DNA of 64,000 nucleotides, from the sequence record NC_061447.1; one strand, given 5' to 3'. Below are positions 20,614 through 52,805 of this stretch, in pieces. The translations under genes and the position numbers were made by a program. Under the pieces are notes generated by a model that was not told the origin of the DNA, made no database searches, and saw only the letters and a program-made list of their open reading frames with translations. The first letter of the stretch is position 1. The number at the start of each line of letters is the position of its first letter.

Positions 20614-21036
20614 TTACTGTGACCTCATTGCAAACGTAATTGATTGTTTGTCTTCGAGCTTCGGACAACGCCATGTGACTACACATACGTAGGTCTGATC
20701 AAATTGATCGCTGGCAGTACATGCGGTTTGCACGTTCGTCACATCCTGCGTCAGACCATTGTACGGGTCTTCGAGTGCAAGGCGCATATACGTTGCAATC
20801 CAGTCGGCCGTCGTTTGGTCGAACGGCTCAAAGAGATATTGATACACGTCAGCGCCGAAGTTCTCACGCCACTTACGGGATTTCTTGCGCGTACCAATTA
20901 CCATCAGAATCTTCTGGACGATGCTGTCCATGTTCTGAACATTATCACGCGGTTCAAGTTGAATCCACGCATTGATATCACAATAGATGCGCTCACTAAT
21001 AGGCACATCTATCAGTCTAATTCCGATTCCTGCCAT
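20614..21036 (-). CDS. Baseplate wedge subunit, T4 gp25 / gpW-like
   Basis: SIVQKILMVIGTRKKSRKWRENFGADVYQYLFEPFDQTTA matches the gp25-family pattern. Confidence 0.85.
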   Translation of the reverse strand: MAGIGIRLIDVPISERIYCDINAWIQLEPRDNVQNMDSIVQKILMVIGTRKKSRKWRENFGADVYQYLFEPFDQTTADWIATYMRLALEDPYNGLTQDVTNVQTACTASDQFDQTYVCVVTWRCPKLEDKQSITFAMRSQ

Positions 21037-21326
21037 CAGCCAAATCTCACGTTAGAACTACCGTTAGATGCTGTGTCGCCACAACTGTTTGCGTCACCAG
21101 CACGTTGAGCTGGCTTGCCGTTGACGCGCACACTGGAGCTTGAAGTAGCTTTACCTGTATGAGGAGGCTTCTTTGGTTTCCAGTGTGGGCGATAGCTATC
21201 GCCTTGGCGAACACTCCCTTTCCCATTCACGAATACGTTAGACGAAGCCTGCGCAGGAACAACAGGAAAATAACCGCTGTGCCCTGTAGACAGATCTGTG
21301 CCTAAACGAATAGCAGGTTTACCCAT
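21036..21326 (-). CDS. PAAR-repeat spike tip protein (T4 gp5.4-like)
   Basis: KPAIRLGTD..TGH, VFVNGK...RQGD, VRVNGKPAQRAGD..SCG motifs, 96 aa. Confidence 0.92.
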   Translation of the reverse strand: MGKPAIRLGTDLSTGHSGYFPVVPAQASSNVFVNGKGSVRQGDSYRPHWKPKKPPHTGKATSSSSVRVNGKPAQRAGDANSCGDTASNGSSNVRFG

Positions 21327-21447
21327 TTCTATTTGCCTTCATTGGAGGGATTTTAGGAGAGCGCGGAGGGCTGATTTTCTGTCTCTCAAGTTTCTTCTTG
21401 CCGTCTTTTACGTCAAAGAATAACTTCCAATCAGTACATCGACACAT
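21319..21447 (-). CDS. Small basic ORF (42 aa, MCRCTDWKLFFDVKDGKKKLERQKISPPRSPKIPPMKANRNG)
   Basis: Below the track cut-off. AGAGGAG RBS 7 nt before the ATG, GCTAATTT motif upstream, stop overlaps the PAAR start. Confidence 0.65.
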   Translation of the reverse strand: MCRCTDWKLFFDVKDGKKKLERQKISPPRSPKIPPMKANRNG

Positions 21448-21470
21448 AACTATTCTCCTCTGTTAGGCAC

Positions 21471-21478
21471 AAATTAGC
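21471..21478 (-). promoter_or_regulatory. Candidate late-promoter motif GCTAATTT (copy 2)
   Basis: Exact intergenic copy between the terminator at 21493-21524 and ATG 21447. Confidence 0.55.
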
Positions 21479-21492
21479 TTGTTGCGCAGTAG

Positions 21493-21524
21493 AAACGAAA
21501 ACGGGCGACCCGAAGGCCACCCGT
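21493..21524 (-). terminator. Rho-independent terminator with cUUCGg loop
   Basis: ACGGGTGGCC-TTCG-GGTCGCCCGT followed by TTTCGTTTCT on the minus strand. Confidence 0.85.
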
Positions 21525-21556
21525 TTTCTAGTGCTTGGATTTGTGTCGTTACTCCC

Positions 21557-21715
21557 TTACGCCCGATGCAAGTGCCCTACGGCCGAAGCCGGTGAGCTGG
21601 AGTGGAAGACCGAGAGTGAAGCCGCACGCCACGGCAACAGTAAGTGACTCTCGGGCCTAGATAGATCGTGACCAAGCATCACGATTGCTATCAACGACAC
21701 TAAGAACAAAATCAT
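21557..21715 (-). CDS. Putative small membrane peptide (52 aa, MILFLVSLIAIVMLGHDLSRPESHLLLPWRAASLSVFHSSSPASAVGHLHRA)
   Basis: AGGAG 5 nt before the ATG, 14 N-terminal residues nearly all hydrophobic, ends just before the terminator. The coding region is itself highly base-paired, so translation is unproven. Confidence 0.45.
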   Translation of the reverse strand: MILFLVSLIAIVMLGHDLSRPESHLLLPWRAASLSVFHSSSPASAVGHLHRA

Positions 21716-21773
21716 GTTTGCTCCTGTGTCTCCCTATAAGTAAAACATTTGCAAATGTCGATCAAGTTACTTC

Positions 21774-22184
21774 GAATCGCCCTTCGCCCAACATCACTAG
21801 AGTTTCGATTCTTTTTCTCTCTTTACCGCCTGGGTTGCGGCGAGCCGCGCACAAGAACAACGCTTCAACCATACGTGGGCAAGGAGGCACGTACCGTATT
21901 CACATCGCTCAAGCGAAGGAGGTCTCCCATCGGTGATCTGCGGTGGTTAATACACTCTTTAACAATCGCTCTTGTTGTGCATTAGATCGTGGTAGGAACG
22001 CGATTGACCGCTAACAAGTCCTATACGATATTTCACTACCCGGAAAAGTGGGCAAGCTATGGCAGCACGTCAACGACAGCAGGCGCGGACACACTCCATT
22101 GAACATTGTTAAGGGCAATGCTCAACAGGCTGTGAACAGCTTTGACCAAACGTAGAGTCGCTCGTCGCCCAACATCACTTGAGT
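21774..22184. repeat. 30-nt direct repeat (26/30 identical) at 21774-21803 and 22155-22184
   Basis: GAATCGCCCTTCGCCCAACATCACTAGAGT versus GAGTCGCTCGTCGCCCAACATCACTTGAGT. Each copy is enclosed by its own, different stem. Confidence 0.85.
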
Positions 22185-22727
22185 ATCTCGTCTACGTTCT
22201 TTTACTCCCTGAATACCGTACAAGGAAGACGGCGCTCATGAGGGTCTGCGGATGTTTATCACTCTCAGACTCTTGAGCCACTATCTGGAAGCTAACACGT
22301 TGAGTCGTCCGCTGGATGACGTGTTAACTCTCCTCTCCCCGTCGTGCGAGGGCCAGAGTGGTAGCTGATGGATTGTCATGAAGTCCTGACCTAGGTCATC
22401 GCTTCCCAATGCGCACAAAGTGAGAGGATATGCGCATCAGGCAGCGGAGGCTGCGGTATTGCTATCCCTATTAGATGGTTCACAGCGTTGAGAATACGCT
22501 CCAACCATCTACGCGCCTAAGAGGCAGTTGCCGTGCCATGTCTGTCAACGATGAAATCAGCTGGGCCTTTTGAGCGTCAGCAGCAGAGCAACCGTCTATC
22601 GCGTGGGTGCCGGGGTTGTCCTCACGATTACAGAGCTTACACTCAAACCGGCTGGAGGCCTATGTGTTGGCAAGAACAACTCACAGGTTTATGGCTCCCG
22701 GAGAGCGCCCGCTAAGTACACTCTCCG

Positions 22728-22756
22728 ATGATACAACTTGATATTACTATCTGCAA
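22728..22756 (-). promoter_or_regulatory. Sigma70-type promoter TTGCAG-N17-TATCAT with AT-rich UP element
   Basis: -35 at 22751-22756, -10 at 22728-22733, exact 17-nt spacer, upstream AAATCTGTAAATAAAAA. Points into the ORF-less region, TSS about 22721. Confidence 0.75.
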
Positions 22757-22772
22757 TTTTTATTTACAGATT

Positions 22773-24536
22773 TTAGAACGCTTTACGTTCGATATTCGAA
22801 TATAAAGTTTCATACGGCTCAGAGTACAACTCAGGTCCACGCTGTGCGCGAATCGTCACGTAGCCCGTATGACGGTTGAATGCAATAATCTCGACCGTAG
22901 GCTGTTTAGGCTTGATGGTCGCATAGATAGGAGCATTCATTGTTGGTTCGTCTGTCTGAATCTTATTTACAGATTGCAGAGCAGCGCCCGAGATGTTCGG
23001 CAGATTAAAACGCAGTTCAGCGCGTTTCTGGCCAAACGCAGTACGCAGCATACCGGCTTCCAGTGGCACACCATTCTGCTTGAGGTACGCAGCGATGCGA
23101 CGGCCGATGCCTGTGAGCTGGTCACGGGTGCGTGGGTCGAATGTACCTTCGAAGCTGATTGCTTCTGATGGTTGACGTACAGACAGGTGCAGACCAGTGT
23201 TGAAGTAGCCTTCGGTCAGCAGACGCAGAACCTCTTTGACGACTTCTTTAGTGTTAGGCTTGATAGCAGCGATACGCAGTTCAGGCACGTCCACTTTCAC
23301 AGGGTCACGCAGTTCGGTCTGGTTGTCCATGTAACCGAGAGATACGTGCTTTGCGTTGGTGTACGTGTGTTGCAGAACACCAGTAGCGCGAATCAGCACC
23401 GAGCCACCTTTAGATTGATCGTAGAGTTCATCGCTGGTGGTTGTGCTGAACAGGTAATAGTCGGTAGGAACAGCCATGCGATTAACAGCTTCAATCGCTT
23501 TGGTCTGCGCCTCTTTCACAGTAGCACCAAACACAATGCGACTGCGGTTAGGCTGGGCAGCAGATACAGGGAAGAACGCACCGTACACAACGCTTACGTT
23601 TTTCTTAATCGGCTTCTCAGACTGTACTTTCTTACCGCCAGGCAGAGAAGGCAGCTTAACGCCCACCAGCTTGCCTTTGACGATATGCTTGTTCTCTTTA
23701 ACAGGCTTGAGGCCGTCAATGAGTTTCGCCAGATCAGCACCGCTAAGAATCTTCTCCAGCGGAACAGCAAGGTTCTGCGGCAGATAGTGCTTCTTACGGA
23801 ACATGTAGATAACGGTGTCTTTCTTGATCTGCATTGGCGTAGCCATGTTGCGACCAATAACACCGACAGGCTGGAACGTGTTTGCTTTATCGTCAGCGAC
23901 TGCACCGAACTGCTTGGTGAACTCAGTCTGGCCGATGATGTTAGCTGCACGTAAGTGACCACGAACGATAAACACGATCTTCGGTTCATCTTTCATGCGC
24001 AACTCGTAACGGTCACGGTTCAGATAAACCATGCTGAACTTGTCGCCTTTCTCCAGCTCAAGATCGTACTCGTCGTTAGCGTCGTCGATAACAACTTTCT
24101 TACCCTGATAGGTAGCGTACACACGAGGGCCAGCAGATTCGGAAGCAATCTCCATGGCCTTACATGTGTTGGACATAGAGGCAGCGAAGTCCATGACAGC
24201 AGGCATCAGGTCGAACGAAGATGCCACTGCATACGGCTCACGCTTCTTACCAAGCTGTACGTGGACAGCGCTACTGCTGGACATGAACACAGTGTTACCA
24301 GTGTCTTCATGTGTGCCAGCGAAGTGCATACCACTGATACGTTCGATGATGTTTGCGTTAAGCGACTGGAAGTTTACTTCGCTTCCTGCGGTGAAGTCAT
24401 AAATCTCACCGTTGCGCCACGCATATGCCACGTTGTTGGAGCTAAGACCTACAAAAGCATCACCCAACTGACGCACGGTCAATGGCATGATGCTCAGGTC
24501 ACGAATAATCGAGGACTGCTTTTGAATGAGGTTCAT
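22773..24536 (-). CDS. Hypothetical protein (587 aa) carrying the repeated head-region domain
   Basis: Long ORF with RBS. Segment VYATYQGKKVVI...LEKGDKFSM...RYEL..KDEPKIVFIV is similar to N-termini of 36990..37664, 45559..46689 and 52806..54677. Confidence 0.8.
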   Translation of the reverse strand: MNLIQKQSSIIRDLSIMPLTVRQLGDAFVGLSSNNVAYAWRNGEIYDFTAGSEVNFQSLNANIIERISGMHFAGTHEDTGNTVFMSSSSAVHVQLGKKREPYAVASSFDLMPAVMDFAASMSNTCKAMEIASESAGPRVYATYQGKKVVIDDANDEYDLELEKGDKFSMVYLNRDRYELRMKDEPKIVFIVRGHLRAANIIGQTEFTKQFGAVADDKANTFQPVGVIGRNMATPMQIKKDTVIYMFRKKHYLPQNLAVPLEKILSGADLAKLIDGLKPVKENKHIVKGKLVGVKLPSLPGGKKVQSEKPIKKNVSVVYGAFFPVSAAQPNRSRIVFGATVKEAQTKAIEAVNRMAVPTDYYLFSTTTSDELYDQSKGGSVLIRATGVLQHTYTNAKHVSLGYMDNQTELRDPVKVDVPELRIAAIKPNTKEVVKEVLRLLTEGYFNTGLHLSVRQPSEAISFEGTFDPRTRDQLTGIGRRIAAYLKQNGVPLEAGMLRTAFGQKRAELRFNLPNISGAALQSVNKIQTDEPTMNAPIYATIKPKQPTVEIIAFNRHTGYVTIRAQRGPELYSEPYETLYSNIERKAF

Positions 24537-52766: not shown

Positions 52767-52805
52767 GTTATTCTCCAATCGTCAGTAACACTGGTATTTA
52801 CAGCC

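Follow-up and report, generated by a model that had tools for sequence, protein, structure and literature searches.

Between a PAAR gene and a gene for a 587-aa protein in Erwinia phage pEa_SNUABM_33 (Alexandravirus), the minus strand almost certainly encodes a real, functional structured RNA. The locus lies in a 64,000-nt stretch of record NC_061447.1 (hereafter the window, to which all coordinates refer; window 21300–22900 corresponds to record positions 83300–84900 at 100% identity). Comparison with related phages shows that about 1.0 kb of this predicted RNA, unable to encode a protein, is under strong selection to keep some 40 minus-strand helices. A reading of the DNA letters alone (the original prediction) had proposed a previously undescribed large structured phage RNA here, with a short open reading frame (sORF) at its 3′ end. 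The proposal is borne out by covariation, by the asymmetry between the strands, by conservation in several genera and by the lack of a match in Rfam or the literature.

We aligned the locus, in minus-strand sense, across 19 sequences: 15 from Alexandravirus (2 of them metagenomic), 2 from Sasquatchvirus, 1 from Snuvirus and 1 partial metagenomic lineage. A base pair was called compensatory if at least one sequence had both partners changed with pairing kept, and clean if it was at least 90% canonical. RNAalifold predicted 237 pairs, 116 of them compensatory; with RIBOSUM scoring it predicted 355 pairs, of which 151 were compensatory and 91 of these clean, and 93.3% of cells were paired. By comparison, 1,300 nt of the adjacent 587-aa gene from the same 19 genomes gave 44 compensatory and 10 clean pairs, and twelve conservation-preserving column shuffles gave 44.5 ± 6.2 and 18.8 ± 3.3. 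Compensatory support therefore exceeds that of the column shuffles with a z-score of about 17–22, and the alignment fold energy is −528 versus −313 ± 10. Thus, the covariation check on syntenic relatives that the original prediction had proposed came out far beyond controls. At least two compensatory pairs and at least 90% pairing were found in 22 helices. A junction pair of the 5′-most conserved domain (domain I, Table 1) is C-G in 12 sequences, U-A in 5 and A-U in 2, one eight-pair stem is wholly rewritten between subgroups, and hairpin loops interchange UUCG, GAAA and UAAA across the alignment. An energy-free search for covarying stacks returned output too noisy for use. Considered as an operational class, large ornate non-coding RNAs are recognized by more than 500 nt without a conserved frame and by helix support beyond controls, and the locus displays both.

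The alignment also indicates which molecule is selected. G-U cells outnumber A-C cells by 893 to 88, and the antisense strand folds about 100 kcal/mol worse than the sense strand (−431 versus −528), which argues that selection acts on the minus-strand RNA and not on duplex DNA. This one-strand selection on pairing, with G-U tolerated, A-C avoided and tetraloops swapped, speaks against a function at the DNA level, for instance as a replication origin or packaging site, as does the gap itself, in which we found neither iterons nor an A+T-rich stretch. A decayed or recoded protein gene would be the corresponding explanation on the coding side. Small open reading frames (ORFs) occur at the locus in related phages, and the G+C content of the gap, about 50%, is coding-like and close to that of flanking coding DNA. 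However, each of the six frames contains 8–32 stops in each of 16 sequenced phages from three genera (Alexandravirus, Sasquatchvirus and Snuvirus), with the length of the gap retained. All three stop codon types are present in every frame, so that no stop reassignment opens one, and the alignment shows no codon periodicity outside the sORF. A decayed protein gene, which the original prediction had itself raised as an objection, and a recoded one are thereby rejected for the 1-kb part, and we consider this whole group of explanations, coding or DNA-based, extremely improbable.

The stretch from 21109 to 22772 is the largest in the window without an ORF of at least 100 aa; the next-largest uncovered stretches are one of 572 nt, which touches the edge of the window, and two of 345 and 325 nt. 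From PAAR to the 587-aa gene, the gap spans 1,267–1,456 nt in the 16 phages, or 1,267–1,357 nt excluding lineage-specific inserts at either end. Its position and length (about 1.27–1.36 kb) are retained in Alexandravirus, Sasquatchvirus, Snuvirus and four metagenomic lineages, and 46 phage records keep the gap. About 1,020 nt of it (21716–22739) hold no conserved reading frame in the 16 phages. The description of the stretch as ORF-less was thus correct as to its rank in the 64 kb, but its last 160 nt contain a conserved peptide gene. Short 'hypothetical protein' coding sequences (CDSs) that RefSeq places inside the RNA region (L007–L010, L012 and L013) lie on either strand, vary by record and are not conserved; these non-conserved calls are probably spurious.

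No known RNA family accounts for the locus. Rfam 15 (4,227 models, including GOLLD, ROOL, OLE, raiA, HEARO, group I and II introns, RNase P, tmRNA, 6S, rRNAs and riboswitches) gave no match at the gathering score in the whole window and none at six related loci. In E-value mode (E ≤ 10), region 21200–23000 returned three chance-level matches of at most 22 bits each. ARAGORN called no tRNA or tmRNA gene over the 64 kb. These searches, the Rfam comparison being one that the original prediction had itself suggested, agree with its failure to see a tRNA, tmRNA, RNase P or group I or II intron signature. A description of this RNA was not found in full-text literature searches.

Not every structural detail picked out from the single sequence fared equally well. 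Five of the seven perfect stems listed at the outset are kept with compensatory changes (22472–22480/22503–22511, 22149–22156/22191–22198, 21610–21617/21647–21654, 22293–22299/22320–22326 and 22409–22415/22431–22437), whereas 21543–21550/21693–21700 is mostly conserved with little covariation and 21665–21671/21679–21685 is specific to pEa_SNUABM_33 (46% paired in the alignment). An internal UUCG hairpin (about 21574–21597) is real and takes part in the loop interchange described above. Two proposed palindromes (21745–21758 and 22387–22398) both fall in variable or deleted stretches.

Table 1. Predicted features of the RNA locus and its borders, listed 5′ to 3′ in RNA sense.
Feature	Position	Strand	Support or comment
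Gene for 587-aa protein	22773–24536	−	Lies directly 5′ of the RNA in each of the seven phage lineages examined
Invariant 33-nt box	22740–22772	−	Immediately 3′ of the 587-aa stop codon; 93% identity over 20 relatives
Predicted transcript, ~1.24 kb: structured RNA, then sORF, then terminator	21497–22739	−	Alignment fold; 5′ end predicted
Variable 5′ hairpins	22659–22735	−	Helices 22677–22687/22659–22669, 9/10 pairs compensatory; sequence poorly conserved
Domain I: three-way junction (CCAGCNGG ... GUAAUCGUGAGGA ... CCNGCACCCAC) plus long hairpin	22508–22661	−	Model R1, 105–164 bits, all lineages
Conserved hairpin with the 9-bp stem of the original prediction	22473–22510	−	12 pairs, 6 compensatory
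Domain II, including hairpin GCUGCCUGAUG ... CAUUGGGAAG	22380–22468	−	
Unit A (AGCGG ... GUGAUAAACAUCCGCAG ... CAGGGAGUAAAAGA), paralogue of unit B	22196–22330	−	Model R2 matches in 6 lineages
Module hairpin 1, with AGUGAUGUUGGGCGA at 22165–22179	22148–22199	−	Outer helix 8/11, inner helix 5/5 pairs compensatory
Three adjacent hairpins: short invariant (22129–22140) plus two longer	22064–22140	−	
Unit B, 3′ domain (UUAGCGG ... GUGUAUUAACCACCGCAGAUCACCGAUG ... ACCUCCUUCGC ... CAGGCGGUAAAGA)	21816–22018	−	Model R2, 119–216 bits, full-length orthologues
Module hairpin 2, with second AGUGAUGUUGGGCGA at 21784–21798	21774–21811	−	Helices 5/6 and 3/6 compensatory, 96–98% paired
sORF, 52 codons, predicted single-pass membrane peptide (N terminus MILFLVSLIAIVMLG)	21557–21715	−	AGGAG ribosome-binding site
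Intrinsic terminator	21497–21528	−	Scan: 14-bp stem, UUCG loop, U-rich tail
Conserved box with AAGCUAAUUU and ribosome-binding site	21447–21490	−	85–88% identical across genera; also matches JA11/JA29

Within this predicted architecture, conserved domains alternate with variable stretches, one between domain II and unit A and another, a linker, between module hairpin 2 and the sORF. Domain I contains long invariant single-stranded stretches. In domain II, helix 22429–22440/22406–22417 (12 pairs, 5 compensatory) is 99% paired and has invariant flanks, and the unit A hairpin at 22289–22330 has compensatory changes in 9 of its 10 pairs. The adjacent hairpins further 3′ differ in how much they vary: helix 22116–22128/22096–22108 has 8 compensatory pairs out of 13, while 22083–22095/22064–22077 is conserved without variation and the 4-pair helix 22137–22140/22129–22132 likewise does not vary. 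Long-range covarying helices join 22583–22604 with 22511–22536 and 21926–21934 with 21825–21834. An unpaired stretch in unit B, ACCUCCUUCGC (21915–21925, minus strand), is invariant in every aligned lineage except Sasquatchvirus and is complementary to a Shine–Dalgarno-like AGGAG, but shows no covariation with the ribosome-binding site of the sORF.

Several domains of the RNA resemble one another. R2, the covariance model built on unit B, also scores unit A in six lineages, more weakly than unit B itself (14.8–30.5 bits), and the model of domain I (R1) touches unit A weakly. A closing helix, AGC(N)GG / CC(N)GCA, is common to domain I and units A and B, with GUG..AAC preceding it on the 3′ side. 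A hairpin with the identical 15-mer AGUGAUGUUGGGCGA follows both unit A and unit B, the second copy being exact. At the level of predicted structure, these shared elements establish that the RNA is modular and that there is a relationship among domain I, unit A and unit B. Across 19 R2 matches, comprising orthologues, paralogues and distant sequences in an alignment that was fitted to the model structure, 96.8% of cells were paired versus 77.3 ± 1.1 in shuffles, none of 500 of which reached as high. Changes on both sides were seen in 28 of the 41 pairs, and pairing fell to 28–46% when the partners were slid. A natural variant (L157, described below) lacks profile positions 375–629, that is, unit A with its hairpin, so that unit A is dispensable in nature.

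The sORF at the 3′ end is open in all 20 genomes read through here, over 47–65 codons. Its indels in the main alignment, 3 and 15 nt, are multiples of three, two added sequences having been checked for the open frame only, and its stop position is the same in nearly all genomes. Over codons 1–20, column entropy by codon position is 0.60/0.27/0.66, the second position being the most conserved, and isoleucine and leucine codons vary synonymously, as expected of a hydrophobic helix. pEa_SNUABM_5 has a positional counterpart with a similar N terminus, and three annotated CDSs (L007 1608–1766, L012 1609–1752 and L013 1606–1749) correspond to the conserved sORF. In all likelihood, then, the sORF is a real membrane-peptide gene that is translated. 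Periodicity is lacking in the remaining 32 codons, with which five covarying hairpins overlap; the sequence of this tail seems to be shaped mainly by RNA structure, with the frame kept open.

Both ends of the predicted transcript carry conserved elements. Yoloswag, pEa_SNUABM_5, JA11/JA29 and fHe-Yen9-02 retain the core of the 5′ box, AATCTGTAAATA..TAATT, at the corresponding position, and in the first two it lies directly 3′ of the intrinsic terminator of the upstream gene. The phage has been assigned to the 'Lupandier' group together with PaBG, Lu11, AD1, the JA phages, Y3, Yoloswag and Alexandra, and phages of this group encode their own sigma-70-like factor (PMC7412058). Because the box follows terminators in Yoloswag and pEa_SNUABM_5 and the group has such a factor, we regard it as a putative phage-type promoter for the RNA, which is more likely than a host promoter. 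The original prediction had instead placed a near-consensus host sigma-70 promoter at 22728–22756 (TTGCAG-N17-TATCAT). These letters are present, but the −35 element agrees at 3 of 6 positions, the promoter scan did not list the site and the −10 element is 38% identical in relatives, and we rejected it; the host-type, early regulation deduced from it loses its basis, the conserved element here being the box. The 17-mer of the box has no second copy in the window. Its 12-mer ATCTGTAAATAA has a second exact copy at 22963–22974 (minus strand), about 200 nt upstream and inside the 3′ end of the 587-aa gene, and the total count of this 12-mer in the window is within chance. CTGTAAATA occurs four times in the window, each time on the minus strand, one copy at 52803 lying 25 nt before a gene start. 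As a recurring phage promoter motif, these copies of CTGTAAATA and ATCTGTAAATAA are suggestive only.

At the opposite end, the scan recovered the cUUCGg terminator that had been recognized at the outset. Its stem is 96% paired across 20–21 sequences while varying between G-C, G-U and A-U pairs, and it is the one terminator-like site that the scan found in 20800–23400. The RNA probably forms its own transcription unit. A gap filled with a set of separate small RNAs and small ORFs would be a different way to account for the modular units, of which unit A can be lost, and for the small annotated ORFs at the locus in Yoloswag, pEa_SNUABM_5 and fHe-Yen9-02. We consider this very unlikely: a single terminator-like site was found in the region, covarying long-range helices join distant segments, and the 3′ sORF is the only conserved small ORF.

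By BLAST, the region matches only Erwinia and Dickeya phages of this clade. Pattern scans revealed four new metagenomic lineages (L031 with L039, L053, L023 and L019), L031 and L039 being two contigs from one sample that were kept as separate, unjoined pieces. The scan of IMG/VR returned this clade only, plus 3 chance matches, and a metagenome scan yielded one new lineage and two contigs of a lineage already known. Of two genome scans, one was without matches and the other gave 105, one of them real. In 185,579 species-representative prokaryotic genomes, this sole real match is a 34.7-kb contig from a 'Raoultibacter' bin (L157; JAVWLC010000001.1, 16001–24000), which carries the 587-aa gene (73% identity), the RNA and PAAR and appears to be a fragment of a jumbo phage that was binned wrongly.

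In more distant genera, the locus spans 1.7–2.4 kb with small annotated ORFs, and sequence profiles detected no homology there except at the 3′ end. Covariance-model matches in these phages lie on the sense strand, just 3′ of the 587-aa gene and in the right order. Yersinia phage fHe-Yen9-02 has an R2-type domain (28.4 bits, E = 2e-5). The Dickeya phages JA11 and JA29 have syntenic R1-type matches (16 bits, E ~0.014–0.03) and syntenic R2-type matches (17 bits in JA29 and 14 bits in JA11), and Yoloswag and pEa_SNUABM_5 have sub-threshold syntenic matches only (E = 1.8 and 5.5). The Yersinia phage and, on weaker matches, the Dickeya JA phages probably carry a compact form of about 0.5 kb with two domains, one of the domain-I type and one of the unit-B type. 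JA29 has two unit-B-type domains (L036 5689–5827 and 5961–6145) and JA11 has one (L035 5687–5873), a difference which suggests that a domain was recently duplicated or lost at the locus. In fHe-Yen9-02, three annotated ORFs of 31–56 codons (L037 5358–5785) overlie the R1-type and R2-type matches and may be mis-calls over RNA.

All genes neighbouring the locus are on the minus strand. In RNA sense, the genes for a nudix hydrolase, an MmcB-like protein, thymidylate kinase, a 144-aa protein and the 587-aa protein lie 5′; the sole recognizable domain of the last is KMPT-N (PF20294, residues 139–201). On the 3′ side, a lineage-specific 42-aa ORF is followed by PAAR and, beyond it, by baseplate genes of the gp25-like and gp6-like kinds. 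The box at 21447–21490 serves this next unit (the 42-aa sORF and the PAAR and baseplate genes) and is a neighbour outside the RNA. AAGCTAATTT has six copies in the window at no more than one mismatch, each on the minus strand. The 42-codon ORF (21319–21447, minus strand) would encode a basic peptide and sits within an insertion of about 120 nt between the terminator and PAAR, which among the 16 aligned phages is present only in pEa_SNUABM_33, AD1 and pEa_SNUABM_3. The unaligned phage vB_Ea_2910A has a 99.6% BLAST match to this stretch, and the insertion shows weak similarity to stretches of Yoloswag and pEa_SNUABM_5 (E = 0.014).

As to function, for which the original prediction had named a scaffold, sponge, decoy or leader, we lean towards reading minus strand 21497–22739 as one RNA gene whose product is both a trans-acting multivalent scaffold or sponge and the mRNA for the peptide. 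Transcription would start just 3′ of the invariant box, and the folded RNA would work in trans, as RNA. Its repeated domains may bind several copies of one protein, from phage or host, since the three related domains, together with a 15-nt motif shared by two hairpins, suggest that one partner is bound multivalently. The peptide would be translated from the same transcript and could tether the complex to the membrane, by analogy with OLE and OapA. The scaffold or ribonucleoprotein (RNP) mechanism in itself is put forward only tentatively.

Its position directly 5′ of a conserved same-strand ORF, followed by a terminator and a large late-gene operon, would also suit a giant cis-acting leader that controls either translation of the peptide ORF (the AGGAG could pair with codons 4–5) or terminator read-through into the PAAR and baseplate operon; two mutually exclusive helices that use GUGUC(G) at the ORF start fit such a switch. 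Riboswitches and T-boxes, however, measure 100–300 nt, and about 1 kb with some 40 helices for a 50-codon ORF far exceeds known leaders. The best-conserved parts, domain I and unit B, lie 300–900 nt from the ORF, and pEa_SNUABM_3 and pEa_SNUABM_7 retain the RNA although the AGGAG of the sORF is missing. Size, the distance between domains and ORF, and a fold kept in phages without the ribosome-binding site thus argue against a mere leader. In addition, covariation between the conserved CCUCCUU stretch and the ribosome-binding site is absent, so we rejected a pairing between the two; the next operon has its own conserved box; and no Rfam cis-regulatory model matched, which leaves position 5′ of the ORF as the only fitting feature. 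We therefore consider a leader unlikely.

The locus could instead specify an RNA-only machine, either a ribozyme or a self-assembling symmetric multimer of the sort reported for GOLLD, ROOL and OLE (bioRxiv 10.1101/2024.12.08.627333), given its large size, its many invariant unpaired stretches within covarying helices and its internal domain repeats; ROOL and GOLLD are phage-associated. By contrast, no Rfam ribozyme or large-RNA model matched, no conserved self-complementary loop was noticed in the alignments (no systematic search was made), and the genomic context suggests no reaction or substrate. We regard such a machine as quite improbable.

Several observations weigh against the trans-acting scaffold and peptide mRNA that we favour, or against parts of it. 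The domain repetition is also compatible with an RNA-only assembly or a ribozyme, and no RNA-related domain that might mark the partner of a scaffold was found in the proteins neighbouring the locus. In pEa_SNUABM_33, no terminator lies between the 587-aa gene and the box, so read-through may also produce the RNA, as the 3′ portion of the mRNA that comes from that gene. The folding energy of this sequence alone is unexceptional (z = −1.4 and −1.9), and the case for structure rests on comparison. The two scoring schemes conflict on some long-range helices, and the matches in JA11 and JA29 are weak (14–17 bits).

Among known systems, OLE RNA of extremophile bacteria (Bacillota) is about 600 nt long, and OapA is the membrane partner reported to tether it. 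The phage RNA resembles this pair in its large ornate fold with many covarying helices and in the adjoining membrane-protein gene, conserved here in 20 genomes; this shared arrangement is what suggests a membrane-tethered RNP. It differs in that the phage RNA is about 1,000 nt long and comes from virulent Enterobacterales jumbo phages, the peptide has only about 50 residues and is on the same transcript, and no Rfam match or other homology to OLE was found. GOLLD and ROOL typically lie near tRNA genes. Like them, the phage RNA is large, structured, carried by a phage (as GOLLD and ROOL often are by phages or prophages), without a known function and recognized by covariation alone; unlike them, it matches no model, lies in a window without a tRNA gene, and has an ORF and a threefold domain repeat. 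GOLLD and ROOL have been shown to form RNA-only multimers (bioRxiv 10.1101/2024.12.08.627333). As judged by these comparisons, the phage RNA is outside GOLLD, ROOL, OLE and any curated family, but shares their operational kind.

Smaller RNAs offer partial parallels. SgrS/SgrT and RNAIII/hld are base-pairing regulators of 200–500 nt that, like the phage transcript, combine a structured RNA with a short ORF, but the structured part here is about 1 kb and no target complementarity was identified. phi29 pRNA, of about 170 nt and needed for packaging, is likewise a phage-encoded structured RNA and part of a multimeric machine, and the phage RNA lies within a structural-gene region; there is no similarity between the two, however. 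A further set of RNAs comprises the candidate structured RNAs from IMG/VR, which average 67 nt (PMC10690425). These, too, were detected in phage contigs through covariation, and short pieces of the present locus may be among them; the main text makes no mention of Erwinia, jumbo phages or this locus.

Natural non-ribosomal RNAs of more than about 600 nt with well-supported conserved folds are very few (OLE, GOLLD, ROOL, HEARO and raiA), and most of their roles are open. The phage RNA is unusual in having a peptide ORF embedded in it, in repeating a domain three times and in residing in virulent Enterobacterales jumbo phages, and its covariation is unusually clear for an RNA family of about 1 kb. 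For annotation, it means that a conserved 50-codon membrane-peptide gene has gone mostly unannotated and that several RefSeq calls in the gap are probably spurious. As a conjecture, it may be the founding member of a new family of modular RNAs of about 0.5–1.2 kb in Lupandier jumbo phages of Erwinia, Dickeya and Yersinia, one that grows by duplicating a protein- or self-binding domain. On this view, it would act during infection as an RNP or RNA assembly that is multivalent and may be tethered to the membrane, and among large ornate RNAs it would be the first to come from cultured, virulent phages whose Enterobacterales hosts are easy to handle. Natural variants, with a three-domain form, a form without unit A and compact two-domain forms, are at hand for comparison. 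As the phages are isolated, lytic and grow on routine laboratory hosts, the expression, structure and partners of the RNA would be directly describable rather than inferred from metagenomes.

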